Shown here: one piece after another, positions 14,429-51,589 of the stretch
Numbering within the stretch: position 1 is the first letter of the stretch
Layout of the letters: each line of letters begins with the position of its first letter
Virus record (IMG/VR): IMGVR_UViG_3300042540_001822
Coordinates: 62,001 to 126,000 of that record
DNA: 64,000 bases
Reading direction: 5' to 3' (one strand)
Program-made: the position numbers and the translations under genes
The notes under the pieces: generated by a model
Told to the model about the DNA's origin: nothing
The model's database searches: none
What the model saw: the letters and a program-made list of their open reading frames with translations, nothing else

Positions 14429-15247
14429 ATGAAACACCTCCAATCCTTTTCCCTGTTCGAAGCCCAAACTTCTGTCCTGACCACAGACCAAGAGGCATTT
14501 TTGAATGAATACATCAAAGGAGCATGGTCGGTCAATCCAACAACAGGTCTGGTCGATGTGGAGGGAAATTTTGCTTGTAGTTCCAAAAGGCTGAAGTCTC
14601 TGTCGGGCATCTCGTTCGGACATGTGAGTGGGAATTTCGCCTGTTTCAACAACCAACTGACCTCCCTGAAAGGAGCACCACAGACGGTGGGTGGGGGTTT
14701 CGATTGTTCTTATAACGATCTCACTTCCCTGGAAGGAGCACCACAGACGGTGGGTGGGGATTTCAATTGCTTTTATAATTACAATCTTAAATCCTTGGAA
14801 GGAGCACCTCGGACTGTGGGTGTGAATTTCGATTGTTCTTATAACGATCTCACTTCCCTGGAAGGAGCACCTCAGACGGTGGGTGGGGATTTCAATTGCT
14901 TTTATAATTACAATCTTAAATCCTTGGAAGGAGCACCTCGGACTGTGGGTGTGAATTTCCTTTCTGACAAATTCCAATTAGAAGAAGGCGAATGGAACAT
15001 GCAAGGATGGCTGGAGGTTTTGAACACAGGAACGGAAGAAGCCAAAAAATTGATTTCCACCCTGCCATGGCTACAACCGGACTGGTGGAACTTGGAACTC
15101 CAACGGGATCCCGGTAAAACAGTTCATCTATTGGGGTCTTTATGGAAACATATGCCAAAGGACATGCAATCTGCAATTAAGATTCCCGGGGGATATGAAG
15201 ATGATTTCGAACTGTTTTCTGGATTTAACGAGCTGGGCTTGTTTTAG
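14429..15247 (+). CDS. LRR-like variable-module protein 1 (5 modules)
   Basis: FxCxxNxLTSLEGAPQTV repeats; start moved to MKHLQ; internal 129-bp duplication. Confidence 0.9.
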   Translation: MKHLQSFSLFEAQTSVLTTDQEAFLNEYIKGAWSVNPTTGLVDVEGNFACSSKRLKSLSGISFGHVSGNFACFNNQLTSLKGAPQTVGGGFDCSYNDLTSLEGAPQTVGGDFNCFYNYNLKSLEGAPRTVGVNFDCSYNDLTSLEGAPQTVGGDFNCFYNYNLKSLEGAPRTVGVNFLSDKFQLEEGEWNMQGWLEVLNTGTEEAKKLISTLPWLQPDWWNLELQRDPGKTVHLLGSLWKHMPKDMQSAIKIPGGYEDDFELFSGFNELGLF

Positions 15248-15262
15248 AGGATATATAGGAGA

Positions 15263-15886
15263 ATGAAACACCTCCAATCCTTTTCCCTGTTCGAAGCCCA
15301 AACTTCTTTCCTGACAACCGACCAAAAGGAATTTTTAAATGAATGCACCAAAGGAGCATGGTCGGTCAACCGGCAGACCGGTCTGGTCAATGTGGAGGGG
15401 AATTTTGACTGTAGTTTCAAATCACTAAAGTCTCTGCCTGACATCTCGTTCGGACACGTCAGTGGTCATTACGGCTGTTTCAACAACCAACTGACCTCCC
15501 TCGAGGGAGCACCCCAGACGGTAGGCGGGGGTTTCTACTGTTCCAACAACAAACTGACCTCCCTCGAAGGATCCCCACAGACTGTGGGTGGGGATTTTTG
15601 GTGTGACGAATTCGAATTAGATTCAGGCAAATGGAACATGCAAGGATGGGTGGAAGTTCTGAACACAGGAACACCAGCAGCCCAAAAATTGATTTCCACC
15701 CTTCCATGGATCCAACCGGACTGGTGGAACCTGGAACTCCAACGGGATCCCGGGAAGACGGTTCATCTATTGGCCACTGCATGGAATCACATGCCAAAGG
15801 ACATGCAATCTGGAATTAAGATTCCTCGGGGATATGAAGGTGATTTCGAACTGTTTTCCGGATTTGACGAGCTGGGCTTGTTTTAA
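15263..15886 (+). CDS. LRR-like variable-module protein 2 (2 modules)
   Basis: Paralogue; ends SGFDELGLF. Confidence 0.9.
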   Translation: MKHLQSFSLFEAQTSFLTTDQKEFLNECTKGAWSVNRQTGLVNVEGNFDCSFKSLKSLPDISFGHVSGHYGCFNNQLTSLEGAPQTVGGGFYCSNNKLTSLEGSPQTVGGDFWCDEFELDSGKWNMQGWVEVLNTGTPAAQKLISTLPWIQPDWWNLELQRDPGKTVHLLATAWNHMPKDMQSGIKIPRGYEGDFELFSGFDELGLF

Positions 15887-15903
15887 AGGATATATATAAG
15901 GAC

Positions 15904-16716
15904 ATGAAACACCTCCAGTCCTTCGTACTTTTCGAAGCCCAAACTTCTGTCCTGACACCCCGCCAAAATAAATTTTTGAATGGATGCACCAAAGAAACAT
16001 GGTCGGTCAACCGGCAGACTGGTCTGGTCGATGTGAAGGGAAATTTTGACTGTAGTTTCAAATCACTAAAGTCTCTGCATGGCATCTCGTTCGGAAACGT
16101 CAGTGGTCATTTTGGCTGTATATACAACCAACTGACCTCCCTGAAAGGATCACCCCAGACGGTGGGTGGGAATTTCAACTGTTCCACCAACCGACTGACT
16201 TCTCTAGAAGGAGCACCGCAGAAGGTGGGTGTGAGTTTCGACTGTGGTGTAAACAAATTGACCTCCTTGAAAGGATCACCACAGACGGTGGGTGGGATTT
16301 TCTCCTGTTACAACAACCGACTGACCTCTCTCGAAGGAGCACCTCAGAAGGTTGGCTCGAATTTTTCTTGTACTTTTAACGATCTCACTTCCCTGAAAGG
16401 AGCACCTGAGACGGTGGGTGGGTATTTTACGTGTGACGAATTCAAATTAGATTCGGGTGAATGGAACATGGAAGGATGGGTGGAGGTTTTGAACACAGGA
16501 ACACCAGCAGCCCAAAAATTGATTTCCACCCTTCCATGGCTCCAACCAGACTGGTGGAACTCGGAACTCCAACGGGATCCAGCGAAAACAGTTCATCTAT
16601 TGGGGTCTTCATGGAAACATATGCCAAAGGACATTCAATCTGCAATTAAGATTCCTCGGGGATATGAAGGTGATTTTGAATTGTTTTCTGGATTTGACGA
16701 GCTGGGGTTGTTTTAA
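15904..16716 (+). CDS. LRR-like variable-module protein 3 (5 modules)
   Basis: Paralogue. Confidence 0.9.
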   Translation: MKHLQSFVLFEAQTSVLTPRQNKFLNGCTKETWSVNRQTGLVDVKGNFDCSFKSLKSLHGISFGNVSGHFGCIYNQLTSLKGSPQTVGGNFNCSTNRLTSLEGAPQKVGVSFDCGVNKLTSLKGSPQTVGGIFSCYNNRLTSLEGAPQKVGSNFSCTFNDLTSLKGAPETVGGYFTCDEFKLDSGEWNMEGWVEVLNTGTPAAQKLISTLPWLQPDWWNSELQRDPAKTVHLLGSSWKHMPKDIQSAIKIPRGYEGDFELFSGFDELGLF

Positions 16717-16731
16717 AGGATATATAGAGGG

Positions 16732-17544
16732 ATGAAACACATCCAATCCTTTTCTCTGTTCGAAGCCCAAACTTCTGTCCTGACCACAGACCAAGAGGCA
16801 TTTTTGAATGAATTCACCGACGGGACCTGGTCGGTTAATCCAACAACTGGTTTGGTGGACGTTCAGGGTGATTTTAACTGTTTCGGTCAAGGTCTGAAAT
16901 CACTTCGAAAAATATCTTTCGGTCATGTGAGTGGGTATTTCTCCTTTTCCGACAACCAACTGACCTCCCTGGCAGGGGCACCCCAGACGGTGAGTGGGCA
17001 TTTCTTCTGTTCCCGCAACCAACTGACCTCCCTTAAAGGAGCACCCCAGACGGTGGATGGGCCTTTCTACTGTTACAAAAACAAACTGACCTCCCTCGAA
17101 GGAGCACCTCAGACGGTGTATGGGGATTTCCGGTGTTACAATAACCAACTGACCTCCCTAGAAGGAGCACCACAGACGGTGGGCGGGGATTTCTCTTGCT
17201 ACAACAACCAACTGACCTCCCTGGAAGGAGCACCTCAGACGGTGGGTGGGTATTTTACGTGTGACGAATTCCAATTAGATTCGGGTGAATGGAACATGGA
17301 AGGATGGCTGAGGGTTTTGAAAACAGGAAAAACAAAAGCCAAAAAATTGATTCTCACCCTGCCATGGCTACAACCGGACTGGTGGAACTCGGAACTTCAG
17401 CGGGATCCAGGGAAAACCGTTCATCTATTGGGGTCTTTGTGGAAACATATGCCAAAGGACATGCAATCTGGAATTAAGATTCCTCGGGGATATGAAGGTG
17501 ATTTTGAATTGTTTTCTGGATTTGACGAGCTGGGGTTGTTTTAA
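16732..17544 (+). CDS. LRR-like variable-module protein 4 (5 modules)
   Basis: Paralogue. Confidence 0.9.
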   Translation: MKHIQSFSLFEAQTSVLTTDQEAFLNEFTDGTWSVNPTTGLVDVQGDFNCFGQGLKSLRKISFGHVSGYFSFSDNQLTSLAGAPQTVSGHFFCSRNQLTSLKGAPQTVDGPFYCYKNKLTSLEGAPQTVYGDFRCYNNQLTSLEGAPQTVGGDFSCYNNQLTSLEGAPQTVGGYFTCDEFQLDSGEWNMEGWLRVLKTGKTKAKKLILTLPWLQPDWWNSELQRDPGKTVHLLGSLWKHMPKDMQSGIKIPRGYEGDFELFSGFDELGLF

Positions 17545-17559
17545 AGGATATATAGGAGA

Positions 17560-18384
17560 ATGAAACACCTCCAGTCCTTCGTACTTTTCGAAGCCAAAGC
17601 TGCTCGTCTTCCTTCTGGACTTACTCAAAGTCAAGAAAATTTCTTGAACCGACACACCAGAGGAACATGGTCTGTTAATCCAACGACCGGTCTGGTAGAT
17701 GTTTTTGGGGAATTTTACTGTTTCGGTCAAGGTCTGAAATCACTTCGAAAAATATCTTTCGGTCATGTGAGTGGGAATTTCGACTTTTCTTCCAACAAAC
17801 AAACCTCTCTGAAAGGAGCACCCCAGACGGTTAAACGTCAATTCAATTGTTCTGATAACGAACTGACCTCCCTGGAAGGAGCACCTCAGGAGGTAGGTAG
17901 GAGTTTCTACTGTTACAAAAACAAACTGACTTCCCTAGAAGGATCACCTAAGACTGTAGGCGGTGATTTCGACTGTGCTATCAACCATCTGACTTCCCTT
18001 AAAGGAGCACCACAAACGGTGGATGGTCGTTTCTACTGTGATAGGAACAAATTAACCTCCCTGGAAGGAGCACCTCAGACGGTGGTTGGGAATTTTAAGT
18101 GTGACGAATTCGAATTAGATTCAGGTGAATGGAACATGGAAGGATGGCTGAGGGTTTTGAAAACAGGAAAAACAAAAGCCAGAAAATTGATTTGCACCCT
18201 TCCATGGCTACAACCGAACTGGTGGAACTCTGAACTTCAGCGGGATCCCGGTAAAACAGTTCATCTATTGGGGTCTTTGTGGAAACATATGCCAAAGGAC
18301 ATGCAATCTGGAATTAAGATTCCTCGGGGATATGAAGGTGATTTTGAATTGTTTTCTGGATTTGACGAGCTGGGGCTGTTTTAA
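17560..18384 (+). CDS. LRR-like variable-module protein 5 (5 modules)
   Basis: Paralogue. Confidence 0.9.
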   Translation: MKHLQSFVLFEAKAARLPSGLTQSQENFLNRHTRGTWSVNPTTGLVDVFGEFYCFGQGLKSLRKISFGHVSGNFDFSSNKQTSLKGAPQTVKRQFNCSDNELTSLEGAPQEVGRSFYCYKNKLTSLEGSPKTVGGDFDCAINHLTSLKGAPQTVDGRFYCDRNKLTSLEGAPQTVVGNFKCDEFELDSGEWNMEGWLRVLKTGKTKARKLICTLPWLQPNWWNSELQRDPGKTVHLLGSLWKHMPKDMQSGIKIPRGYEGDFELFSGFDELGLF

Positions 18385-18399
18385 AGGATATATAAGGGC

Positions 18400-19278
18400 A
18401 TGAAATATCTCGTTTCATTTGTCCTTTTCGAAACCGAAAAGACTTCAGGCCTGACACCCGGCCAAGAGGCATTTTTGAATGAATGCTCCAGCAAGACCTG
18501 GTCGGTTAACCGGCAGAATGGTCTGGTCGATGTGCAAGGAGGTTTTACTTGTAGTTTCAAATCCCTAACGTCTCTGCCTGACATCTCGTTCGGAAACGTC
18601 AGTGGTCATTTCATCTGTTCCAACAACCAAATGACCTCCCTTGATGGAGCACCACAGAAGGTGGGTGGGATTTTCTCCTGTGCCGGCAATCAGCTGACCT
18701 CCCTAAAAGGAGCAACCCAGAATGTGGGCGGGAATTTTTGGTGTCACCAAAACCAGCTGACCTCCCTGGAAGGAGCACCCCAGACGGTGAACGGGAATTT
18801 CCACTGTTACTACAACCGACTGACCTCTCTCGAAGGAGCACCCCAGACGGTAAAAAAGAATTTCCACTGTTACAAAAACCAACTGACCTCACTTAAAGGA
18901 GCACCTGAGACGGTGGGTGGGAATTTTGAATGTTCCAACAACAAACTCCAATCCCTGGAAGGAGCACCTCATACGATAAACGGGGGTTTTCGGTGTGACG
19001 AATTCCATTTATATTCAGGCAAATGGAACATGCAAGGATGGGTGGAGGTTTTGAACACAGGAACACCAGCAGCCCAAAAATTGATTTCCACCCTTCCATG
19101 GATCCAACCGGACTGGTGGAACCAGGAACTCCAAAGGGATCCTGGGAAGACGGTTCATCTGTTGTCTACCATGTGGAACCACATGCCAAAGGACATGCAA
19201 TCTGCAATTCAGATCCCTCGGGGATATGAAGGTGATTTTGAATTGTTTACTGGATTTGACGAGCTGGGCTTGTTTTAA
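18400..19278 (+). CDS. LRR-like variable-module protein 6 (6 modules)
   Basis: Paralogue. Confidence 0.9.
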   Translation: MKYLVSFVLFETEKTSGLTPGQEAFLNECSSKTWSVNRQNGLVDVQGGFTCSFKSLTSLPDISFGNVSGHFICSNNQMTSLDGAPQKVGGIFSCAGNQLTSLKGATQNVGGNFWCHQNQLTSLEGAPQTVNGNFHCYYNRLTSLEGAPQTVKKNFHCYKNQLTSLKGAPETVGGNFECSNNKLQSLEGAPHTINGGFRCDEFHLYSGKWNMQGWVEVLNTGTPAAQKLISTLPWIQPDWWNQELQRDPGKTVHLLSTMWNHMPKDMQSAIQIPRGYEGDFELFTGFDELGLF

Positions 19279-19295
19279 AGGATATATATAGGAGA

Positions 19296-20171
19296 ATGAA
19301 ACACATTCAATCCTTTTCCCTGTTCGAAGCCCAAACTTCTGTCCTGACAACCGACCAAGAGGAATTTTTAAATGAATGCACCGACGGGACCTGGTCGGTT
19401 AATCCAACAACAGGTCTGGTAGATGTTAAAGGAGATTTTGATTGTAGTTCCAAAAGGCTGAAGTCTTTGTCGGGCATCTCGTTCGGACATGTCAGTGGGT
19501 ATTTCTTCTGTTCCAACAACCAATTGACCTCCCTGAAAGGAGCACCTCAGACGGTGAGTGGGACTTTCTTCTGTACTGACAACAAACTGACCTCCCTGAA
19601 AGGAGCACCACAGACGGTGGGTGGGAGTTTCTACTGCGGTGAAAACCAATTGACCTCCCTGGAAGGTGCACCCCAGACGGTGAGTGAGGATTTTTGGTGT
19701 CACCAAAACCGACTGACCTCCCTCGAAGGAGCACCCCAGACGGTGGGTGGAAGTTTCAACTGTATGGACAACCGGCTGACCTCCCTGGCGGGAGCACCTC
19801 AGACGGTGGATGTGGATTTCAATTGCTTTCATAACAATCTTAAATCCTTGGAAGGAGCACCTCAGAAGGTGGGTAGGAATTTTAAGTGTAACGGATTCCA
19901 ATTAGATCCAGGCAAATGGAACATGGAAGGATGGCTGGAGGTTCTGAACACAGGAACACCAGCAGCCCAAAAATTGATTCTAACCCTTCCATGGCTACAA
20001 CCGAACTGGTGGAACTCTGAACTTCAGCGGGATCCCGGTAAAACAGTTCATCTATTGGCCACTGTATGGAATGACATGACAAAGAACATGCAATCTGCAA
20101 TTAAGATTCCTAAGGGATATGAAGATGATTTCGAACTGTTTTCTGGATTTGACGAGCTGGGCTTGTTTTAA
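19296..20171 (+). CDS. LRR-like variable-module protein 7 (6 modules)
   Basis: Paralogue. Confidence 0.9.
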   Translation: MKHIQSFSLFEAQTSVLTTDQEEFLNECTDGTWSVNPTTGLVDVKGDFDCSSKRLKSLSGISFGHVSGYFFCSNNQLTSLKGAPQTVSGTFFCTDNKLTSLKGAPQTVGGSFYCGENQLTSLEGAPQTVSEDFWCHQNRLTSLEGAPQTVGGSFNCMDNRLTSLAGAPQTVDVDFNCFHNNLKSLEGAPQKVGRNFKCNGFQLDPGKWNMEGWLEVLNTGTPAAQKLILTLPWLQPNWWNSELQRDPGKTVHLLATVWNDMTKNMQSAIKIPKGYEDDFELFSGFDELGLF

Positions 20172-20186
20172 AGGATATATTAGGAC

Positions 20187-20810
20187 ATGAAACACATCCA
20201 ATCCTTTTCTCTGTTCGAAGCCCAAACTTCTGTCCTGACAACCGACCAAGAGGAATTTTTAAATGAATGCACCGACGGGACCTGGTCGGTCAACCGGCAC
20301 ACTGGTCTGGTCAATGTGCAAGGAGGTTTTGCTTGTAGTTTCAAAAGTCTAACGTCTCTGAATGGCATCTCGTTCGGACACGTCAGTGGTAATTTCTTCT
20401 GTTTCTACAACCATCTGACCTCCCTGGAAGGAGCACCTCAGACGGTGGGTGGGGATTTCTTCTGTGATAAAAACAGATTAACCTCCCTGGAAGGAGCACC
20501 ACAAGAAATAAATGGTCGATTTCTTTGTGATGAATTTGAATTAATCAAGGGTAAATGGAACATTGAAGGATGGGCGGAGGTTCTGAACACGGGAACGGAA
20601 GAAGCCAAAAAATTGATTCTCACCCTTCCGTGGCTCCAACCGGACTGGTGGAACTCGGAACTCCAACGGGATCCAGGGAAGACGGTTCATCTATTGGCCA
20701 CTGTATGGAAGAGCATGCCAAAGGACATGCAATCTGCAATTAAGATCCCTCGGGGATATGAAGGTGATTTCGAATTGTTTTCTGGATTTGACGAGCTGGG
20801 TTTGTTTTAA
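20187..20810 (+). CDS. LRR-like variable-module protein 8 (2 modules)
   Basis: Paralogue. Confidence 0.9.
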   Translation: MKHIQSFSLFEAQTSVLTTDQEEFLNECTDGTWSVNRHTGLVNVQGGFACSFKSLTSLNGISFGHVSGNFFCFYNHLTSLEGAPQTVGGDFFCDKNRLTSLEGAPQEINGRFLCDEFELIKGKWNIEGWAEVLNTGTEEAKKLILTLPWLQPDWWNSELQRDPGKTVHLLATVWKSMPKDMQSAIKIPRGYEGDFELFSGFDELGLF

Positions 20811-20910
20811 AGGATAATCGCAGATCCGGAGTGAATTTTTTTTGGAAAAATTCGAAAGTTTGAGGATTTATATGTAATTTTGGGGTAAACACACTTCAAA
20901 AAAAATTGTA

Positions 20911-21303
20911 ATGAACACACCAGTAAGTTTTGAATTAGCTAAGTTGCTAAAAGAAAAAGGATTTGATGGTAATTACTTTCATTATTGGAATATGGTAAAT
21001 CATAGCGGAGAATGGAAAGTAGATACAAGTATATGGGAATATACTGACAATTATATTGAAGCACCAACCATTGCAGAAGTAGTAATGTGGTTGTATGAGA
21101 AGCATGGGATTTGGATTTATCCATTACCTATAGATGATGATATGAAATTATGGCAAGCAAGAATTATTAAAGGTGAACCATTTAATAAATTAAGCAATAC
21201 CTTAAAAATAATATCTTATGGGGAAATTTCCTACAGAGGTATATATTCACCAACAGAAGCTTATGAAGCTGCTATCAAATACACTTTAAAAAACTTAATC
21301 TAA
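20911..21303 (+). CDS. Phage protein, MNTPVSFELAKLLKEK family
   Basis: Conserved ends shared with 21698..22063. Confidence 0.8.
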   Translation: MNTPVSFELAKLLKEKGFDGNYFHYWNMVNHSGEWKVDTSIWEYTDNYIEAPTIAEVVMWLYEKHGIWIYPLPIDDDMKLWQARIIKGEPFNKLSNTLKIISYGEISYRGIYSPTEAYEAAIKYTLKNLI

Positions 21304-25528: not shown

Positions 25529-26410
25529 ATGAAACATCTGATTCCATTTAGGATCTACGAATCCCAGACGACTTCAGGTCTTACGGAGGGACAGAAGGAA
25601 TTCTTGAACAAATACACACGAGGAACCTGGTCCGTCAATCCAACAACAGGTTTGGTGGATATAGATGGGTATTTTGATTGTTCAGGTAGTAAAATTAAAA
25701 ACTTTATGGGAATTCAATTTGGTGAAGTGACACGATCTTTTGATTGCGAGTCTAACCTTTTAACTTCTTTGGAAGGATCGCCCAGGTTCGTGCGTGGTAC
25801 TTTTAGATGTAACAATAACTCTATCACCTCTTTGGAAGGATCTCCCCAAACTGTAGGGGGGGATTTCCTTTGCAGCAAAAACTCACTTTCTTCGATTAAA
25901 GGAGCTCCAAGAAAAGTTGGTGAGGATTTTTGGTGCAATGATAATGATATAGAAACACTAGAGGGTGGTCCAGATATTGTTGGTAAAGATTTTGAATGCG
26001 AAAATAACCATCTGAGCTCTCTTAAGGGATCACCAAAAACGATTCCGGGAGATTTTTATTGTTATGGAAACCCTTTATTAATTTCTCTCGAAGGAGCACC
26101 ACAGACTATAGATGGGATTTTCTTCCACGACAAAATAAAAATGAAAAAAGGAGAATGGAACATGCGAGGATGGGTGGAGGTTCTGAACACAGGATCAGAA
26201 AAAGACAAAAAATTGATTCTCACCCTGCCATGGCTCCAATCGGACTGGTGGAACTTGGAACTCCAAAGAGATCCTGGGAAGACGGTTCATCTATTGGCCA
26301 ATGTATGGAATCTTATTCCAAAGAACATGCAATCTGCAATTAAGATTCCTAAAGGATATGAAGATGATTTCGAACTGTTTTCCGGATTTAACGAGCTGGG
26401 TTTGTTTTAA
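25529..26410 (+). CDS. LRR-like variable-module protein 9 (6 modules)
   Basis: Paralogue with more divergent modules. Confidence 0.9.
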   Translation: MKHLIPFRIYESQTTSGLTEGQKEFLNKYTRGTWSVNPTTGLVDIDGYFDCSGSKIKNFMGIQFGEVTRSFDCESNLLTSLEGSPRFVRGTFRCNNNSITSLEGSPQTVGGDFLCSKNSLSSIKGAPRKVGEDFWCNDNDIETLEGGPDIVGKDFECENNHLSSLKGSPKTIPGDFYCYGNPLLISLEGAPQTIDGIFFHDKIKMKKGEWNMRGWVEVLNTGSEKDKKLILTLPWLQSDWWNLELQRDPGKTVHLLANVWNLIPKNMQSAIKIPKGYEDDFELFSGFNELGLF

Positions 26411-26424
26411 AGGATATATAGAAC

Positions 26425-26997
26425 ATGAAACACCTGAAATTATTCGAAAATTTCACGAAAGATGATTTGGATAATTTGATTTCGGGATTTGAGGAACTCG
26501 GAATTAACAAAAAGAAATTTCTCAGAATTAAATTTGTTGGTATTTACGTAACTGAATCTGATAGAACAAATGAAGCTGATTTCAGATTTCATAATGATAG
26601 AATTTTGAGGATCCCAATTTCGGAATTTGAAAAAGAAGATTTAGAACCCGGCAAAGAATCTTTTTCGAAAACCCTCCAAGATTCGGTTTTATATGCCATC
26701 AGAAATGGTGAAGCCGAAGTAAATCCAGATTGTGTGGGTGAATTATATATTGGCGAAACTTTTGATCCTAGTACCTTAATCTCCGTCGCCGAAAAAACAC
26801 AAACCCTGGATGGATTTTGGGATCTTGTCACCCAATATTTATATGATGTTGGAACTGATATCATTTATGACCATTTCAGTAATGAAGGTATAATGGAAGA
26901 ATTCGCTGATTTTTTCTTTGACGAATGCAAGAATTTAAAGCCAAAATTTTGGATAGAAAAAGAAGGTGAAAAATGGGGGGAAATCAGTAAAATATAA
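26425..26997 (+). CDS. Acidic protein with N-terminal LISGFEELG motif
   Basis: MKHLKLFENF...DLDNLISGFEELGI. Confidence 0.8.
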   Translation: MKHLKLFENFTKDDLDNLISGFEELGINKKKFLRIKFVGIYVTESDRTNEADFRFHNDRILRIPISEFEKEDLEPGKESFSKTLQDSVLYAIRNGEAEVNPDCVGELYIGETFDPSTLISVAEKTQTLDGFWDLVTQYLYDVGTDIIYDHFSNEGIMEEFADFFFDECKNLKPKFWIEKEGEKWGEISKI

Positions 26998-27001
26998 AGA
27001 C

Positions 27002-27754
27002 ATGAAACATCTTCTCCCATTTAGGATATACGAATCCCAGACGACTTCAGGTCTGACCGAGGAACAGCAGGAATTCTTGAACAAATACACCGAAGGAACC
27101 TGGTCTGTCAATCCAACAACAGGTTTGGTGGACGTTCAGGGTGATTTTAACTGTAGTTCCGAAAGACTGAAGTCTCTGCTGGACATCCATTTCGGACATG
27201 TGGTTGGGAATTTCAACTGTTACGACAACCGACTGACCTCGCTGGCGGGAGCACCCCAGACGGTGGGTGGGAATTTCAACTGTTACAACAACAAACTGAC
27301 CTCCCTGGAAGGATCACCTCAGACGGTGGGTGGGGATTTCAATTGCTTTTTTAACGATCTTAAATCCTTGGAAGGAGCACCTCAGACGGTGGGCGGGAAT
27401 TTCGATTTCTCTCCTAACGATCTTAAATCCTTGGAAGGAGCACCCTATACGATAAATGGGATTTTTATTTCTGACGAATTCAAATTAGATGCTGGCAAAT
27501 GGAACATGGCAGGATGGCTGAAGGTTCTCAACACAGGAACAGAAGAAGCCAAAAAATTGATTCTCACCCTGCCATGGCTCCAACCGGACTGGTGGAACTT
27601 GGAACTCCAACGGGATCCAGGCAAAACAGTCCATCTGTTGGGGTCTTTATGGAACCACTTGCCAAAGAACATTCAATCTGCAATCAAGATTCCTAAGGGA
27701 TATGAAGATCAGATGGATCTGTTTTCTGGATTCGACGAGCTGGGTTTGTTTTAG
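27002..27754 (+). CDS. LRR-like variable-module protein 10 (4 modules)
   Basis: Start moved to MKHLLPF. Confidence 0.9.
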   Translation: MKHLLPFRIYESQTTSGLTEEQQEFLNKYTEGTWSVNPTTGLVDVQGDFNCSSERLKSLLDIHFGHVVGNFNCYDNRLTSLAGAPQTVGGNFNCYNNKLTSLEGSPQTVGGDFNCFFNDLKSLEGAPQTVGGNFDFSPNDLKSLEGAPYTINGIFISDEFKLDAGKWNMAGWLKVLNTGTEEAKKLILTLPWLQPDWWNLELQRDPGKTVHLLGSLWNHLPKNIQSAIKIPKGYEDQMDLFSGFDELGLF

Positions 27755-32633: not shown

Positions 32634-33458
32634 ATGAAACGTATCCTTCCATTTGTACTTTTCGAATCCAAAGCTGTTCGTCTTCTTTGTGGTCCCACCA
32701 AGAAGCAGGAGGAATTCTTAAATCGTTACACACGAGGAACCTGGTCTGTTAATCCATCAACTGGTTTGGTGGACGTTCAGGGTGATTTTGATTGTTTCGA
32801 TCTACGTCTGAAATCCTTTCGAGGAATCTCGTTCGGACATGTCAGTGGGTATTTCGGCTGTTCCGGCAACCAGCTGACCTCCCTGGAAGGAGCACCCCAG
32901 ACGGTGGGTGGGGGTTTCCACTGTTCCAACAACCGATTGACCTCCCTGAAAGGAGCACCCCTGACGGTGAACGGGGATTTCCTCTGTTACAACAACCAGC
33001 TGACCTCGCTGGCGGGAGCACCACAGACGGTGGGTGGGTTTTTTAAGTGTTACGACAACCAGCTGACCTCTCTTAAAGGAGCACCTCAGACGGTGGGTGA
33101 TGCTTTCTCCTGTTACGACAACCAGCTGACCTCCCTCGAAGGAGCACCTCAGACGGTGGGTGGGAAATTCTATTGTGATTTATTCGAAATACAAAAAGGC
33201 AAATGGAACATGGAAGGATGGGCGGAGGTTCTGAACACAGGAACACCAGCAGCCCAAAAATTGATTCTCACCCTCCCATGGCTAGGACCGGACTGGTGGA
33301 ACCAGGAACTCCAACGGGATCCAGCGAAAACAGTTCATCTATTGGCCACTGTATGGAACCACATGCCAAAGGACATGCAATCTGCAATCAAGATTCCTAA
33401 GGGATATGAGAATCAGTTGGATCTGTTTTCTGGATTCGACGAGCTGGGCTTGTTTTGA
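32634..33458 (+). CDS. LRR-like variable-module protein 12 (5 modules)
   Basis: Paralogue; ends QLDLFSGFDELGLF. Confidence 0.9.
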   Translation: MKRILPFVLFESKAVRLLCGPTKKQEEFLNRYTRGTWSVNPSTGLVDVQGDFDCFDLRLKSFRGISFGHVSGYFGCSGNQLTSLEGAPQTVGGGFHCSNNRLTSLKGAPLTVNGDFLCYNNQLTSLAGAPQTVGGFFKCYDNQLTSLKGAPQTVGDAFSCYDNQLTSLEGAPQTVGGKFYCDLFEIQKGKWNMEGWAEVLNTGTPAAQKLILTLPWLGPDWWNQELQRDPAKTVHLLATVWNHMPKDMQSAIKIPKGYENQLDLFSGFDELGLF

Positions 33459-34145: not shown

Positions 34146-36077
34146 ATGCAATTTAATCTACAGAAATTTTCTGATTTCGTTTGGCAAAGAATTTTGGAGG
34201 AAGACGATAATCCGGTTTCACCTCAAACCACTCCCAATCCGTTTAGTTCACATTGGCTTGACCGAACTGCATTACCAGGAGACCCGGAATACGGGAAAAA
34301 AAAGTCTAGAATAGTTCCATTCGAAGAGGATATAAACCCGGAGGGATTTGTTCTAAAACAAAATCTTTTAAATTCCAATGGAATTATAATTGATAGTCTG
34401 ACTTTAAATAATGTCTTAACGGGATCAGTGTTAGATTTTGAAGAATTGAGAAAAATTCTATCCCGTATTTTTTATAAAATTGCCAGAAGTTCCAAAATCA
34501 AAAATTTTTTAATCCAAACTGAAAATATTTCAGGTTTAAAGTCCAATTGGATCATGTTTTTGGGAAAAGTTTGTTTGAAAAATTCATCCTTAACAGATGA
34601 AAAATTATTTTTAGATTTCAGATGGGTTAAGGCTGTGGAGGAAAAAACCGGAGGTTCAATGTGGGGAGGAGGAAAAGGAATTGATCCTGGAGCAATGACG
34701 ATTTTGTTTTATTCTATAGGATCTAATTCAGATCCAATCTACAATCGTTATATTCAGAAAAACGCTGCTTTAGGTGAGATTGCCAACCAAGCAGGACAGA
34801 GAATTGTCAGAGTGCCAAGTGCTTCCGAAATTAAATCGGTTCAACTACTCTATCCTTTAGGTAAAGATTTCACCTTCGAAATTGACCTCCAGGAAAATTT
34901 ATTTCAAATTCTGAATTCAATACAAACACAAATTCATTCTGCACAGGAGGAATTCCCAGTGGTAGATCAAAAACAAGAAAAAATTGATTTTGTACCTCAA
35001 AAAATATTCAATCTTTTCCAAGAAAATGCCATTTGGTTTTTAGATGGGGATTTGGTTTTTAACAACGAGAAAATTTTAGATATTTTTGATGCCATAGATG
35101 ATGGAAGATTTTTAATCTGGGATTCAAATCAGAAGACTTATTCTAGTCCAACCTATATTTTTACCGATGAAATGTTGGTGAAAACAAGAAAAAGACTGGA
35201 AAATTTTTTCTCCCATTTCTATGAACAATTTGAAAAACAAAAGTACTCTAGAGTTAGTTTGCAAAATCTTAACACACAAAATTTTAAAAATGCTTTTGAA
35301 GATATCAAGTTGTGCTTTGATAACTTTAAATTTAAAAAAGGAATGGATTTTAAAAAATTAAATTCCAAAATGAGACAAGAAATTGAAAAGACGACAGAAA
35401 ACAAAAAAAACCGTGTTTCTGATTTTTCTAATTTTTTGGCAGAAAGGGAAAAAATTTCCGCCAGGAAGAAAAATCCATGTTGGTCTGGTTACAAAAAGGT
35501 GGGAATGAAAACCAAAAATGGCAAATCCGTGCCCAACTGTGTTCCTGTAAACAAATCTAAGAATATTTTAGGAGAAAATGAGAATATAGATGACATAATT
35601 TCTGGGTTCGAAGATCTTGGAATTAATAAAAAACTCAAGGTTTGGTTTATAGACTGGGAGTCTCATGTAGATGGTTGTAGTCGATATCTATTGTGTGTTG
35701 AAGGCTACACCAGACCGGAAGCCATTTTGAAAATTGCAGAAACTTTGAGTGTAGAAGATGGGGTAGATCAGGAAGATTGGAAAAATTTTTTAAATCTCGT
35801 GGAAGAAGATAAAGATGGAATTTGGGGAGAATTGGTTCAACTAGTTCAGGAGTCGAATTACAGAGAGGAAGAAGAAACCCTTTTGTCTGTTAATGTCATG
35901 GATCACCCTAAACCCTCAGCTTTAGAACTTGAGCCTAGATCGCTCACTCTTTATAATGATTTCAATTCTTTTACAAAAAATGCAGAATTGGTTCTAGAGG
36001 CTGACAGAAATTTGAAATCTTGGTATGGAATAAATTTGGACTCAATTGAAAAATTAGAATCAGACCATTGGATATAA
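34146..36077 (+). CDS. Multi-module (possibly processed) protein with internal IISGFEDLG module
   Basis: Internal DFSNFLAE, PCWSGYKKVGMKTKNGKSVPNCVP, then a C-terminal domain homologous to the next three genes. Confidence 0.75.
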   Translation: MQFNLQKFSDFVWQRILEEDDNPVSPQTTPNPFSSHWLDRTALPGDPEYGKKKSRIVPFEEDINPEGFVLKQNLLNSNGIIIDSLTLNNVLTGSVLDFEELRKILSRIFYKIARSSKIKNFLIQTENISGLKSNWIMFLGKVCLKNSSLTDEKLFLDFRWVKAVEEKTGGSMWGGGKGIDPGAMTILFYSIGSNSDPIYNRYIQKNAALGEIANQAGQRIVRVPSASEIKSVQLLYPLGKDFTFEIDLQENLFQILNSIQTQIHSAQEEFPVVDQKQEKIDFVPQKIFNLFQENAIWFLDGDLVFNNEKILDIFDAIDDGRFLIWDSNQKTYSSPTYIFTDEMLVKTRKRLENFFSHFYEQFEKQKYSRVSLQNLNTQNFKNAFEDIKLCFDNFKFKKGMDFKKLNSKMRQEIEKTTENKKNRVSDFSNFLAEREKISARKKNPCWSGYKKVGMKTKNGKSVPNCVPVNKSKNILGENENIDDIISGFEDLGINKKLKVWFIDWESHVDGCSRYLLCVEGYTRPEAILKIAETLSVEDGVDQEDWKNFLNLVEEDKDGIWGELVQLVQESNYREEEETLLSVNVMDHPKPSALELEPRSLTLYNDFNSFTKNAELVLEADRNLKSWYGINLDSIEKLESDHWI

Positions 36078-36090
36078 AATAAGAAAATGT

Positions 36091-36600
36091 ATGGCACTTA
36101 AAAATTTTTTAGATTTTTTTCTGACCGAAAACTCAGAGGAAGAAATTAATTCTTTAATTTCTGGATTTGAGGATTTGGGCATAAATGAAAAGCCCAAGGT
36201 TTGGTTCTTCTCGGCTGATTCCAGAGCGGATGGTTTCATAGAAGAATTGTTGGTTGTAGAGGCTACAACTGAAATAGAAGCAATTAAGATGGTCTTAAAA
36301 CATTCTTTAATTAATTATGAAGAGGAAGAAGATGGTTCTATCTCCACTGAAGACGGCGACCCAATAAAAGATTTAGAAGACCTCGCAACAGCTTGTGAAG
36401 ATTATTACAGCGATGTAAATTATTCATTTTCTTTCATAGACCAAATTACACACCCATTCCCGAGCCGATATCAACCAGGCACAACTGAGTATTCAATTTA
36501 TAGACAATATCACGAGGGTTTAAGTAATGCTTTTAAGGAGATAAATAAAACCAACGCCGAATTAAAGAGAAAATATGGCATTGGATTGGAAGATTTATAA
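36091..36600 (+). CDS. Acidic LISGFEDLGINEKPKVWF family protein
   Basis: Tandem paralogue. Confidence 0.8.
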   Translation: MALKNFLDFFLTENSEEEINSLISGFEDLGINEKPKVWFFSADSRADGFIEELLVVEATTEIEAIKMVLKHSLINYEEEEDGSISTEDGDPIKDLEDLATACEDYYSDVNYSFSFIDQITHPFPSRYQPGTTEYSIYRQYHEGLSNAFKEINKTNAELKRKYGIGLEDL

Positions 36601-36619
36601 GGGATAAATAAAATTTAAA

Positions 36620-37120
36620 ATGGCACTCAAAAAATTTTTTGAATTTTCAATTTCTGAAACAGAAGAAGATCCCGAATCTTTAATTTCTGGATTTGAGGAT
36701 TTGGGCATAAATGAAAAGCCCAAGGTTTGGTTTTTCATTTTAGATTGGTACGATCACAATTTTACTGGAGATATAGATAATGAGATTCCGGATTATTCAT
36801 ATTTAATTGTTATAGAGGCAAATTCACAAAAAGAAGCCATGGATTTTTTAAGTGAATATAGTCAGTCAGAATTTAAGGAAGAAATTCTCAACAGAGAAAA
36901 TTGGAATCAATTTCTTAAAGAATTCAATCAAACTGCTTTGGAGGAAGCACATCCTATCGGATGTAAGTTACATCTTTTAAAAGAAATTTTCCACCCTTAT
37001 TCATCTAAATTTCAACCTGGTTTTGAATTATTTGCCCTTGATAAAGGGAACAACAAAATACTGAACCAAGAATTAATTCAAAAATATGGAGTGGGAACAG
37101 AAGACCTTCGTATTTATTAA
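36620..37120 (+). CDS. Acidic LISGFEDLGINEKPKVWF family protein
   Basis: Tandem paralogue. Confidence 0.8.
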   Translation: MALKKFFEFSISETEEDPESLISGFEDLGINEKPKVWFFILDWYDHNFTGDIDNEIPDYSYLIVIEANSQKEAMDFLSEYSQSEFKEEILNRENWNQFLKEFNQTALEEAHPIGCKLHLLKEIFHPYSSKFQPGFELFALDKGNNKILNQELIQKYGVGTEDLRIY

Positions 37121-37134
37121 AAAAATAAAAAATT

Positions 37135-37638
37135 ATGAAATTACAAAATTTTTCGAATTTTTCCCCCCAAAAAAAAGATGACTATGATATTGATTCTTTG
37201 ATTTCTGGATTTGAGGATTTGGGCATAAATGAAAAGCCCAAGGTTTGGTTTTTTGATTACTCTTGTTTTGGAGATGGAACTCACCAAAGAAACATTCTCG
37301 CCATACAGGCAATTTCCGAAATGGACGCCAAAAGAATGATGATGGAATATTTTAAAGCTGGAAGACCATCGAATTTTTCCCAAAAGTTGGGAAGCGATAA
37401 AGGCTGGGAAAATTTTCTAGAATTTATTTTAGAAAAAGCCAATCCTGCTCTTGGAATGGAAGTAATCGATTTAGTAAAAGAAATTCCATTTCCTAACCCT
37501 TCTCGATTCAAAGAGGGAATTAATAATTTGGTTTTATATTGGTCTGAAAATCAAGCAATTGATTGTTTTCATGCTATGAATGACGTAGAAGAATATCTTA
37601 GAAAAAAATATAATATTGGATTGGAAGATTTTTCCTAA
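37135..37638 (+). CDS. Acidic LISGFEDLGINEKPKVWF family protein
   Basis: Tandem paralogue. Confidence 0.8.
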   Translation: MKLQNFSNFSPQKKDDYDIDSLISGFEDLGINEKPKVWFFDYSCFGDGTHQRNILAIQAISEMDAKRMMMEYFKAGRPSNFSQKLGSDKGWENFLEFILEKANPALGMEVIDLVKEIPFPNPSRFKEGINNLVLYWSENQAIDCFHAMNDVEEYLRKKYNIGLEDFS

Positions 37639-37662: not shown

Positions 37663-38061
37663 TCAGGTTGGATCGTGTGTGGATAATTTCCATTTCCACC
37701 CTTCAATCATCAATGAAGCAGTGGCATAATTCGTGGCTAGTGGCACATTGTAAACATTGCAAACTCTTAGAAGCATATTTACGTCCACAATGTGAGGATG
37801 AACAGCCAAGGGGTCGATAAAAAACACGACCCCATCCACATGTCCGTCTGCTATCATGGCGGCGATTTGGGCGTCACCCCCCATAGGTCCAGACTTCTTT
37901 TTCTCTACCCGAATCCCAGCATGTTCGATGTGTGTACCTGTGGTACCGGTGGCCACGATGTTGTGGAGGCAAAAGAAATCCATTCTTTTCATGATGAAAG
38001 CAACTATGTCAGCTTTTTTCCCATCATGTGCAATAACTGCTATGTTTAGCGGTTTGTTCAT
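37663..38061 (-). CDS. mgsA: Methylglyoxal synthase
   Basis: IAHDGKK, ATGTTG, SGPMGGDAQI, FFIDPL..PH.VD, PLATN.ATA. Confidence 0.93.
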   Translation of the reverse strand: MNKPLNIAVIAHDGKKADIVAFIMKRMDFFCLHNIVATGTTGTHIEHAGIRVEKKKSGPMGGDAQIAAMIADGHVDGVVFFIDPLAVHPHIVDVNMLLRVCNVYNVPLATNYATASLMIEGWKWKLSTHDPT

Positions 38062-39083
38062 AATTTTCTAAATTCTGGCTTCAAAATTTTCCAAATAGAA
38101 TGGGTAATGTCCTTTCCGTCAAGAAGACTAAAAAGCAAATTGGGATGTCTAAATCTGGTGGCCTGTTCCGCATAGGACTTCCGGTCGGAGGGATTAATTT
38201 TTCCAAGAATTTCTTGATGATAAGAAACATAGTCTTTTCGAATGTTGTCAAACCTAAGTGTTAAATCACCAGCTACCTCTTGGACCTTCCGATAAAATTC
38301 ATCAGGTACATCCACAAGTAAATTAGTGAAATCCCCACCGGAAGCCAAAACCTCCCAGATGGCTGTCGTGGAGAGATTGGTCATGATTTTATGTAATCGC
38401 AAATATTCCTCTCCTTTGATTTTCATCCTATCTCCATTCGAAAAACGGATCACAAAACCCTCTGCCTTATCGGAAATTTTCCCTTTTAAAGTGGAATAAT
38501 CTAAAATCCCATCGTATCTGGGAGTTATATCACAAACAATATATTTGGAAGTTAGATTTAAAATTTCGTAAGACATCTCTAATCCATCGTGGGTCCTAAA
38601 TGCTCCCAAAAGGGTGAGTTTATCTTCGTTACCGTAATCTACTACAATCCGGTTCCAAGGAGCAGTTAATTCAAATAAATAGGTATACTCGTCATCAAGA
38701 GTTGAAGTGTCAAGAGCATCAAGCAGTTTTTGTCCAGCAACGGCCTGATCTGAGGTGAAAGAACCTCTAGAGGAGACGAACCAACGGTCCCACACGAAAA
38801 ATGCAATTATCAGGGATCCGTCTATCTTTTCAAACACTTCGAAATCAGGAGTTGGGTTATGTTTGCCTTCCTCCAAATTAAAGAATTTACGGAAGGGCCT
38901 GGCACAGATTGTACCATCATCTGTCCAGGTAACCAATCCCCGGCAACTCAAAGTTACCTCGTCCCAAAGGGATTCGTATTGGACCTTTTCAGTGTAATTC
39001 CAAATTTCAAGGGGATACACTGGATGTTTCTGATGGTACAATAGACCTTGCTGGGCGTATTGACGTAAAGTTTGAAGTTCCAT
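38058..39083 (-). CDS. T4 Rnl1-like RNA ligase
   Basis: CRGL, RPFRKFFN, EKIDGSLI (motif I), SSRGSF, NRIVVDY, EGFV, KIK. Confidence 0.85.
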   Translation of the reverse strand: MELQTLRQYAQQGLLYHQKHPVYPLEIWNYTEKVQYESLWDEVTLSCRGLVTWTDDGTICARPFRKFFNLEEGKHNPTPDFEVFEKIDGSLIIAFFVWDRWFVSSRGSFTSDQAVAGQKLLDALDTSTLDDEYTYLFELTAPWNRIVVDYGNEDKLTLLGAFRTHDGLEMSYEILNLTSKYIVCDITPRYDGILDYSTLKGKISDKAEGFVIRFSNGDRMKIKGEEYLRLHKIMTNLSTTAIWEVLASGGDFTNLLVDVPDEFYRKVQEVAGDLTLRFDNIRKDYVSYHQEILGKINPSDRKSYAEQATRFRHPNLLFSLLDGKDITHSIWKILKPEFRKL

Positions 39084-39940: not shown

Positions 39941-40010
39941 TTTTTTTAACGATTATATTTAATCCAAACTTTTATGTTTCAAAACTGTTTTCATCATGAT
40001 ATATAAATCT

Positions 40011-41201
40011 ATGGAAAATAGAATTTTAAATTTTTCTGATTTCATCTTGGAATCAACAATTAACAGGCCAAATTACTGGGAGGTCAATTACCCTGATAAA
40101 TGGAAGGCTTTGCAAGATCTTGGGTTTGTGGATGTAACCACAGATAGAATGAAGAAAAATGGAAATAACATCATCATAAAAAACGACAATTTACCTCTTT
40201 ACCCCGCCGGAATTTACTATCAAGATTCGGGATATTTAAGAAACGTTGCTGCAAAAAATGGATTTATTACCAGAGACATGAATTGGGTTCAAGCAGCAGA
40301 TTACTTGATTGATAAATTTAGCAAATTAAAACAAATTATTCCTTCAGGCGTTCCCCCAAAAGTTTTCATTTCAATTTTAGAAAAATTAGAAAGATCGATT
40401 GTATCAAAATCGTCAGGAAAAAAAGTAATATTTGATCCATCTTCTAAAGAAGTTACTGTAAAAAGTACATTTGTACTTCATGTGGATGAAATTCCAGAAT
40501 TTATATCTTTGGGTTACAAATTAGGTCATGTGGATTCATTCAAATTGAAAGGAGATTTGACCCGTTATCCAGAAATAACTAAAGCACAATGCGATTTAAT
40601 TTTTCCATCTGAATGTAATGAATTGGAGGTTTTGGGTGTGAAATTTTCATCGGATTGTCAAAATGTTCCTATTTTTCCACCCGCAAGAACTTCGATAAAT
40701 GTAAATATAGAGGGAATTAAAAATTTAAAATGCTTAAGTCCAGATCAACCACAAAAGATTGAAAGTTTAAAGGTTATAAGTGACCTTGAATCTCTGTATG
40801 GATTATACATCATTCAATGTGAAAAAGTAAATTTAAGAGTAAAAAAAAATACAGGACCTCGACCTTGGGAAAATAAACTCACTGGATTGACATTCCCAGA
40901 CAGCTCTAACGATCCTTATTATTCTGGCGTCAAAACTACGGGCTGGGACATTGAAAATTGGGTAAAAGTTCTCCGAGAAGGAAATGAAGAGCAAAAAAAA
41001 CTGATGATAACACTTCCGATGCTAGATTCAAACTTTTGGAATGAACGGATGGAAGAAAATCCAGGTGAAACAATCCACATTTTGGCCCCGATTTGGAATG
41101 ATCCAGGATTTACAGAAATAAACAAGGGAATTAAAATTCCTCCCGGATATGAAGACCAATTAGATTTGTTTTCTGGATTTTCGGAACTGGGATTGTTCTA
41201 G
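40011..41201 (+). CDS. Divergent member sharing the LRR-family C-terminal domain
   Basis: WVKVLREGNEEQKKLMITLP...PGETIHIL...GYEDQLDLFSGFSELGLF; start after GATATATA at 39998. Confidence 0.8.
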   Translation: MENRILNFSDFILESTINRPNYWEVNYPDKWKALQDLGFVDVTTDRMKKNGNNIIIKNDNLPLYPAGIYYQDSGYLRNVAAKNGFITRDMNWVQAADYLIDKFSKLKQIIPSGVPPKVFISILEKLERSIVSKSSGKKVIFDPSSKEVTVKSTFVLHVDEIPEFISLGYKLGHVDSFKLKGDLTRYPEITKAQCDLIFPSECNELEVLGVKFSSDCQNVPIFPPARTSINVNIEGIKNLKCLSPDQPQKIESLKVISDLESLYGLYIIQCEKVNLRVKKNTGPRPWENKLTGLTFPDSSNDPYYSGVKTTGWDIENWVKVLREGNEEQKKLMITLPMLDSNFWNERMEENPGETIHILAPIWNDPGFTEINKGIKIPPGYEDQLDLFSGFSELGLF

Positions 41202-50195: not shown

Positions 50196-50822
50196 ATGAA
50201 ACATCTGATTCCATTTAGGATCTACGAATCCCAGAAGGCTTCAGGACTTACTCGAAGTCAAGAGGAATTCTTGAACAAATACACCGAAGAAACATGGTCT
50301 GTTAATCCATCGACCGGTCTGGTGGATGTTCAAGGGGATTTTTTTTGTTACGATCGAGGCCTGAAATCCCTGTCAGGCATATCGTTCGGACATGTGAGTG
50401 GGGATTTCTACTGTGGTAAAAACAAATTGGCCTCCCTAGAAGGATCACCCCAGACGGTGGGTGGGGGTTTCTATTGTCAGGGAAACGACCTGACCTCCCT
50501 GGAAGGAGCACCACAAGAAATAAATGGTCGATTTCTTTGTGATGAATTTGAATTAATCAAGGGTAAATGGAACATGCGAGGATGGCTGGAGGTTCTGAAC
50601 ACAGGAACTCCAGAAGACAAAAAATTGATTTCCACCCTTCCGTGGCTCCAACTGGACTGGTGGAACTTGGAACTCCAACGGGATCCAGGGAAAACAGTTC
50701 ATCTGTTGTCCACCATGTGGAATGACATGCCAAAGGACATGCAATCTGCAATCAAGATTCCTAAAGGATATGAAGGTGATTTTGAATTGTTTTCTGGATT
50801 TGACGAGCTGGGGTTGTTTTAA
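50196..50822 (+). CDS. LRR-like variable-module protein 13 (2 modules)
   Basis: Paralogue. Confidence 0.9.
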   Translation: MKHLIPFRIYESQKASGLTRSQEEFLNKYTEETWSVNPSTGLVDVQGDFFCYDRGLKSLSGISFGHVSGDFYCGKNKLASLEGSPQTVGGGFYCQGNDLTSLEGAPQEINGRFLCDEFELIKGKWNMRGWLEVLNTGTPEDKKLISTLPWLQLDWWNLELQRDPGKTVHLLSTMWNDMPKDMQSAIKIPKGYEGDFELFSGFDELGLF

Positions 50823-50836
50823 AGGATATATAAAAA

Positions 50837-51589
50837 ATGAAACATCTGATTCCATTTAGGATCTACGAAGCACAGACTACTTCAGGTCTTACGAAGAGAC
50901 AGGTTAAATTCTTAAACAAATACACAACTGGAGCCTGGTCTGTTAATCCAACGACAGGTTTGGTGGATGTTCAAGGGAATTTTTTTTGTTATTATCAATA
51001 TCTGAAATCCCTGTCAGGCATATCTTTCGGTCATGTAAATGGGAATTTCAACTGTAACACCAACCAACTGACTTCTCTGGAAGGAGCACCAAATACGGTG
51101 AGTGAAAATTTCGTTTGTTTCAACAACCGGCTGACCTCCCTGGAAGGAGCACCTCAGACGGTGGGTAATTATTTCGATTGTTCCCTCAACCAACTCCAGA
51201 CCCTGGAAGGAGCACCTCAAAGAGTGGGTGATAGTTTCGATTGTTCCAGAAACGAACTCCGATCCCTGGTAGGAGCACCTCATACGATAAACGGGGATTT
51301 TCTTTGTGACGAATTCAAATTAGATCCAGGCAAATGGAACATGGAAGGATGGCTGGAGGTTCTGAACACAGGAACTCCACAAGCCAAAAAATTGATTCTC
51401 ACCCTCCCATGGCTCCAACCGGACTGGTGGAACTTGGAACTCCAAAGGGATCCAGGTAAAACAGTTCATCTTTTGGGGTCTGCATGGAACCATATGCCAA
51501 AGGAAATGCAATCTGCAATCAAGATTCCTAAAGGATATGAAGGTGATTTCGAATTGTTTTCTGGATTCGATGAGTTGGGCTTGTTTTAG
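50837..51589 (+). CDS. LRR-like variable-module protein 14 (4 modules)
   Basis: Paralogue. Confidence 0.9.
   Translation: MKHLIPFRIYEAQTTSGLTKRQVKFLNKYTTGAWSVNPTTGLVDVQGNFFCYYQYLKSLSGISFGHVNGNFNCNTNQLTSLEGAPNTVSENFVCFNNRLTSLEGAPQTVGNYFDCSLNQLQTLEGAPQRVGDSFDCSRNELRSLVGAPHTINGDFLCDEFKLDPGKWNMEGWLEVLNTGTPQAKKLILTLPWLQPDWWNLELQRDPGKTVHLLGSAWNHMPKEMQSAIKIPKGYEGDFELFSGFDELGLF

Follow-up and report, generated by a model that had tools for sequence, protein, structure and literature searches.

The DNA analyzed here is a stretch of 64,000 nucleotides (the window), positions 62,001 to 126,000 of the 219,475-bp IMG/VR virus record IMGVR_UViG_3300042540_001822, which belongs to a large, uncultured freshwater phage. 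On its + strand lie three tandem genes, A, B, and C, whose acidic products share the tag SGFEDLG and, with it, an identical block of 50 bp of coding DNA. Gene A (36091..36600) encodes a protein of 169 amino acids (aa) with an isoelectric point (pI) of 4.3, made up of a leader (residues 1–22), the segment specified by the block, and an alpha/beta body. Genes B (36620..37120; 166 aa, pI 4.5) and C (37135..37638; 167 aa, pI 4.8) are paralogs of A and of each other. A fourth paralog, again tag plus body, forms the last ~160 residues of a 643-aa open reading frame (ORF) at 34146..36077 (+), where an unrelated N-terminal part and a linker with a cysteine motif precede it in the same chain. Translation followed table 11 throughout; the standard code fits, and nothing in the ORF statistics pointed to reassigned stop codons.

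The block occurs in the window in exactly three copies without mismatch, all on the + strand, at 36157..36206 in gene A, 36683..36732 in gene B, and 37201..37250 in gene C, each ~66 bp inside its ORF and close to the 5' end. No further copy was found in the window at up to three mismatches, and none is expected by chance (100 dinucleotide-preserving shuffles). Exact identity extends over 56 bp between A and B (36151–36206), 53 bp between B and C (36683–36735), and 50 bp between A and C; the next-longest strings in common are 11–17 bp. The sequence-only reading of the window, which this analysis followed up, held that the block covers exactly the SGFEDLG tag. That proved too narrow: the encoded peptide, I-SGFEDLG-INEKPKVW, includes nine residues beyond the 7-residue tag.

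The same reading took the block to be identical down to its synonymous sites between only weakly similar flanks, and on this point the codon alignments agree with it. Over the 17 codons of the block, the proportion of synonymous differences (pS, Nei–Gojobori) among A, B, and C is 0–0.10, and the sole codon that differs, TTC or TTT, lies immediately beyond the 50 bp. In the bodies, pS is 0.67–0.73, which is saturated, and nonsynonymous divergence (dN) is 0.76–0.89. Outside the block the proteins are 19–28% identical and the DNA 40–47%, so that similar identity does not extend across the genes.

Other carriers of the tag spell it differently. The fourth, unconverted tag segment in the 643-aa ORF (35598..35648, +; tag at residue 486) encodes almost the same peptide, ISGFEDLGINKKLKVWF, but 10 of its 51 bases are not those of the trio (pS 0.71–0.81; proportion of nonsynonymous differences, pN, 0.07). 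Across the 219-kb record the motif SGFx[DE]LG occurs 25 times, at the extreme C terminus of a leucine-rich repeat (LRR)-like family in 16 cases and, in the remaining 9, either ~20–30 residues from the N terminus of a small protein or inside a longer ORF; every copy outside the trio is encoded by other synonymous codons. Since these copies and the 643-aa ORF keep the peptide with different codons, constraint on the peptide does not force nucleotide identity. The tag peptide is therefore kept by purifying selection throughout the genome; the identity of the trio at the nucleotide level is a separate, local phenomenon. At the protein level, 35 sequences with bodies 20–39% identical show little or no variation at M1, F6, F9, and I23–I31.

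Conversion of the block in gene A

To place the block in a wider context, we compared the locus with its relatives. A word-index protein search returned 48 of these, all metagenome proteins. Loci L001–L008 were taken by protein identity and 23 more (L018–L040) by a metagenome scan; as L020 is the same contig as L005, there are thirty related loci in all. They come from lake and freshwater samples, and the window stretch itself is present in 20 runs from 19 studies. A family profile search of 1.84 billion representative proteins gave only 15 clusters, and the family is therefore confined to this phage lineage; one of the clusters is a repeat protein and probably a chance match, and the rest belong to the same lineage-restricted family. 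The phage GenBank collection held no DNA match and no protein match for the locus. Scans of IMG/VR with gene A and with the family alignment found no relatives in a searched set that may omit the phage's own or near records.

In 9 of 11 gene A ortholog clusters, the tag is followed by IND-PPQ or IND-PPE. INEKPK stands at this place in gene A only in the clusters of the window and of L003, as it does in B and C. At the nucleotide level the two block types are clearly distinct, with 14–15 of 51 bases differing between the A type and the B/C type (L001, L002, L004–L006, L019–L023). In the window's gene A, only 1 of 51 bases departs from the B/C type, and this one difference is the A-type TTC codon, kept immediately after the block. 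From the alignment, the converted tract in the window's gene A spans at least 38 bp, from a TCT codon to an AAG codon, and at most about 50 bp. Gene A of L003 is a mosaic, with A-type TCG GGG at the 5' end and B/C-type sequence from GAT TTG on, and the left end of its tract differs from that of the window.

Block and body thus tell different histories. Between the gene A copies of the window and L001, synonymous divergence (dS) in the body is 0.05 and pS in the block is 0.73. In a maximum-likelihood tree of the bodies, the window's gene A falls inside a clade with 98/98 support whose other members are all of the INDPPQ/INDPPE type. As it is nested among carriers of INDPPQ or INDPPE, its INEKPK state is derived. 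The block of the window's gene A equals that of the paralogs B and C, and its body groups with the orthologs. We infer that the transfer ran from B or C to A, the copies in B and C being the likely donor type.

In all lineages sampled, genes B and C have one and the same type of block (0–5 differences), which means that the homogenization between them is either older or recurrent. On the sequences compared, only the conversion of A is recent, falling after the split from the L001- and L019-like phages and around the split from L003. The proposal that the tag was copied by recent conversion accordingly holds for gene A, in which the block was replaced in a body with a dS of 0.05; for B and C the word "recent" needs correction.

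Recombination at the block and competing explanations

The relatives also include natural recombinants with junctions at or inside the block. In 60-bp bins over ~3.4 kb, the window and L003 are 95–100% identical except at 36211–36540, where identity drops to 44–68%. This divergent stretch is the body of gene A and starts directly after the block: a 330-bp cassette (36211..36540, +), with its left junction at the 3' edge of the block and its right junction in the conserved region encoding the C-terminal helix, has been swapped between genomes otherwise 98–100% identical. In the Logan contigs of run X7, part of the window-type A body is likewise missing, with the flanks present. In L023 there are four small genes, A, B', B, and C; in L008, the A leader is joined directly to the B' body, with B and C next in line, and the junction lies at the 5' edge of the block. 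Such a fusion is the product expected of a deletion by crossover between direct repeats. In L004, the upstream region and leader of a gene with a B-type body are 100% identical to the same genome's C gene, with the leader-swap junction between block bases 19 and 27. The suggestion that the block anchors recombination by which downstream domains are swapped is supported by this fusion, leader swap, and body replacement. The fifth paralog, B' (535–1010 in L023, 1370–1909 in L008), is found in some relatives only and has a body 52% identical to that of B; depending on the genome, the small-gene array thus has 3 or 4 members.

We consider it very probable that the tag-coding DNA is converted between paralogs and serves as a crossover point for the variable parts of these genes. 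Purifying selection on the peptide would keep the block segment alike between paralogs and co-infecting relatives, and a segment kept alike would offer a substrate for ordinary homologous recombination. Short-tract gene conversion would homogenize it, synonymous sites included, gene A of the window lineage having taken in a tract from B or C; crossovers in the block would join leaders to bodies anew, remove units or add copies of them, and allow diverged body cassettes to pass between near-identical genomes. That junctions lie at three positions and that the ends of the conversion tracts vary fits homologous rather than site-specific recombination, and the process is thus likely driven by homology rather than targeted by an enzyme. 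The variability of the bodies is likely favored by selection. Read in this way, the locus documents with unusual clarity how, in nature, a short peptide motif maintained by purifying selection seeds micro-conversion and domain shuffling: lake metagenomes from many studies preserve the donors, a chimera at an intermediate stage, and recombinant products of three kinds.

Several points weigh against this account. The polarity of the conversion was established by parsimony over metagenome contigs and not from a rooted whole-genome phylogeny. A RecA-family search of the phage gave one sub-threshold, helicase-like match and identified no phage recombinase, and raw-read run X21 had zero coverage of the locus at a sampling of ~3%. 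The block also contains a 6-bp hairpin, an inverted repeat of TTGGGC and GCCCAA separated by 11 nt. Lastly, in pooled pairs of B/C orthologs, pS is ~0.13 in the block versus ~0.21 in the bodies, a comparison based on ~10 synonymous sites per block copy and on ortholog pairs that are not independent. The two values being this close, strong nucleotide-level constraint is not indicated; given how little the B/C type varies (0–5 differences), a weak one may nevertheless act on the block.

The last two points lead to the alternative that the identity of the block is kept by selection at the nucleotide level, be it on an RNA hairpin, on a site bound by a regulator or a nuclease, or on a translational signal. 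The B/C-type block is little changed in all relatives, and an 86-nt context from gene B folds better than its shuffles (z −3.7). However, the corresponding contexts of A and C do not (z −0.8 and −0.1), nor does the bare block (z −0.1). Rfam has no match at E ≤ 1, and promoter- and terminator-like sites are no commoner than in shuffles, with none inside the block. Furthermore, the hairpin is absent, and other codons are used, in the gene A orthologs, the 643-aa gene, and five other genes with an N-terminal tag, and natural variants break the stem without compensation (GGGA in gene B of L008, CTGGGC in L005). We therefore regard selection on the nucleotide sequence as an improbable cause of the identity.

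Still less probable is a very recent triplication, after which the bodies would have diverged extremely fast under positive selection and left the block as an unchanged remnant. The bodies are indeed highly variable between relatives, with a dN of 0.76–0.89 between paralogs, and the proteins are small, acidic, and lineage-restricted, as is often the case for arms-race genes. But the synonymous sites of the bodies are saturated too, which is not a product of positive selection on the protein; A, B, and C each have separate orthologs in the relatives; and the gene A orthologs bear a different block.

The direct repeats are regularly spaced, at 518–559 bp, and whole units have been gained or lost between relatives (L023 versus L008), as might be expected if the repeats were the sites of a dedicated system moving 0.52-kb units, such as integron- or shufflon-like cassettes or a diversity-generating retroelement. 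We think this highly unlikely. The 219-kb record contains no reverse transcriptase (PF00078), tyrosine recombinase (PF00589), or serine recombinase (PF00239), whereas the same searches of 14 control genomes found them in 3, 14, and 12, respectively. The crossover points are not fixed but lie at the 5' edge, in the interior between bases 19 and 27, and at the 3' edge, the ends of the conversion tracts differ, and the differences between bodies are not restricted to adenines.

A collapsed or mis-threaded repeat in the assembly can practically be dismissed: De Bruijn unitigs do break at the block, but the block is shorter than a read, the independent contig L018 from the Joint Genome Institute (JGI) is identical to the window, the B/C blocks recur in L001, L003, and L019, in unitigs of X6 and X9, both independent runs, the A leader continues into the first 24 bases of the block and the final 30 continue into the A body, and repeat-only unitigs have ~2–4 times the flanking depth in X6, X7, and X9.

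The tag, its carriers, and the surrounding record

Pfam and PHROGs gave nothing for A, B, or C. The AlphaFold2 (AF2) model of the gene A protein, made with a 35-row alignment, has a confident alpha/beta body, with a predicted local distance difference test (pLDDT) score of about 90–96, and residues 1–30, spanning leader and tag, are modeled as two helices of low confidence (pLDDT 51–63). The body fold has no convincing match among solved structures (best Foldseek E value 0.07, best VIA Z score 3.9), and the ESM Atlas yielded nothing above 0.78.

The C termini of A, B, and C (36570–36596, 37090–37117, 37605–37631) follow the pattern YG[IV]G[LT]ED[LF], which resembles the core GFEDL of the N-terminal tag; unlike the tag, this end is modeled at high confidence within the fold. 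In gene A, the conserved 3' end (36570..36596, +; K-YGIGLEDL) lies 3' of the right cassette junction at ~36540, and it forms with 37605–37631 of gene C a 27-nt repeat of 89% identity. Upstream, the cysteine motif NPCWSGYKKVGMKTKNGKSVPNCVP stands just before the internal tag of the 643-aa ORF (window 35440–35560, residues ~433–470). It matches several PHROGs of unknown function and is also present in P0051 and P0027.

The second family of carriers, that of the LRR proteins, comprises the 16 copies with an SGFx[DE]LG ending and two further ORFs with a TGF variant. Its members are located at 14429–20810, 25529–27754, 32634–33458, 39996–41201, and 50196–51589 of the window and, in coordinates of the 219-kb record (G000:C1), at 11837–12517, 19794–20984, and 192859–193809. 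They consist of two to seven repeats of the 21-aa unit GAPQTVGGxFxCxxNxLTSLE, a conserved helical C-terminal domain of ~85 aa, and the ending IKIPxGYExxFELFSGFDELGLF. The AF2 model of an LRR protein is confident (pLDDT 90.6), and its nearest folds are the short LRRs of IpaH, YopM, and SspH. In this model the tag is the last helix, after the conserved helical domain, with a pLDDT of about 82 falling to 63.

At the junctions of the LRR arrays (e.g., 15240–15270, 16710–16740, and 20165–20195), the stop, spacer, and next start are nearly identical, in the form ...TTGTTTTAAAGGATATATA, 3–6 nt, ATGAAACA, and the tag codons before the junctions are likewise nearly identical between members. These junctions are probably another unit of conversion or shuffling. 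Across the whole record, some 40 ORFs of several families have an N terminus resembling MK[HR][LI]xxFxx[FY]E (e.g., at window positions 12892, 15263, 26425, and 30994), whether or not they carry the SGF tag, and its residues are disordered in the LRR model (pLDDT below 50). This N terminus may act as another linear signal or reflect a 5' cassette that the genes have in common, and we take it to be loosely reminiscent of the pattern of the T4 capsid targeting sequence (CTS).

From the models, the tag is most likely a flexible amphipathic-helix motif for docking or addressing, which would bring variable payloads to one common partner or place. Should it be an addressing signal, it could be used to track down the phage's set of variable effectors and the partner they have in common. 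Both the motif and its placement at opposite termini of two unrelated families are undescribed as far as the searched libraries show. A more far-reaching idea, which we offer tentatively and by analogy, is that the SGF-E/D-E/D-LG helix might be a portable address label on more than 25 variable payloads (small acidic alpha/beta proteins bearing it N-terminally, IpaH/YopM-like LRR proteins C-terminally), delivering them to one partner or compartment, for example the capsid for injection, in the manner of the T4 CTS, and that its coding DNA might be a portable recombination site for the exchange of payloads between genes and co-infecting phages. If this were true, address label and recombination site together would make an evolvable effector-cassette system.

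Two other readings of the motif were considered and rejected. A beta-clamp-binding or PCNA-interacting-protein (PIP)-like function of the C-terminal ...QLDLFSGF... conflicts with the presence of the Q in only 4 of 16 copies and with the N-terminal version lacking the motif; a double-glycine export leader conflicts with the occurrence of the same motif at C termini.

Elsewhere in the 219-kb record we found genes of replication and nucleotide metabolism: a split family-B polymerase, ribonucleotide reductase (RNR), a topoisomerase, a helicase, a primase, an SbcCD-like exonuclease, two RNA ligases, ThyA, and a UmuC-like protein. No structural gene was recognized in the record, in which ORFs reach 822 aa at most; it probably represents part of a larger genome. 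A contig with the same gene A protein cluster (P0002) measures 231,759 bp. The window has an intact gene for a T4-type RNA ligase (38058–39083, −). In the near-identical L003 (3146–4086), only the 3' third of this gene is shared, with the identity ending near 38380 and a different ORF of 182 aa following. The thymidylate synthase ORF of the window (61996–63126, −) encodes 375 aa and appears to carry an insertion, as it aligns only to positions 31–307 of a 335-position profile.

Comparison with known systems

By analogy, the T4 CTS is the closest functional counterpart of the tag. Like the T-even internal protein (IP) genes that carry the CTS, genes A, B, and C encode small, diverse, tandem proteins sharing only a short conserved N-terminal leader. 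Repoila and coworkers reportedly proposed in 1994 that conserved leader DNA mediates shuffling at the polymorphic ip loci. The T-even IPs are summarized in PMC3012670 (citing Repoila et al. 1994) as highly diverse defense proteins in which only the CTS is conserved. The leader that bears the tag differs in motif from the CTS and is longer, at ~30 aa (MxLKxFxxF, an acidic run, LISGFEDLGI), and the tag is also found C-terminally on another family. The T4 prohead-protease cleavage site is an L/I-x-E that ends the leader. Upstream of the tag, A has L-T-E and B has I-S-E, with no equivalent in C and the other members. A search of the 219-kb record for Gp23 (PF07068) gave no match, and as it also matched none of the 14 control genomes, this is not proof of absence.

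An analogy by arrangement alone may be drawn with the cargo-loading peptides of encapsulins, short peptides that, behind a flexible linker, sit at the C or N terminus of unrelated cargo and address it to one shell.

As a recombination site, the block is comparable with the His boxes of T-even gp37 and the glycine-rich motifs of gp38, for which Tetart et al. 1998, as relayed in PMC3012670 and PMC3157838, is cited for recombination between motifs that swaps the variable parts. In both cases hypervariable segments are set apart by short, conserved motifs in the coding sequence. Those of gp37 and gp38, however, lie within one gene and form a structural core, whereas the anchor here is a terminal tag common to separate tandem genes, and the unit exchanged is a whole domain. 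The PeSLs (promoter early stem-loops) of T4-type phages are short conserved sequences flanking variable genes in hyperplastic regions, with modular shuffling between close relatives (PMC2839356, PMC4122927). Unlike these intergenic elements, which combine a promoter and a stem-loop, the block lies within genes, as part of their coding sequence, and is free of promoter and terminator signals.

As in the concerted evolution of multigene families in general, a tract with identical synonymous sites is found in diverged paralogs, the donor lies in the same array, and the tract ends are mosaic. The tract here is unusually short by comparison and coincides with a linear peptide motif. The locus is therefore a well-documented new case of familiar processes, joining short-tract conversion in a multigene family with phage shuffling at conserved motifs.

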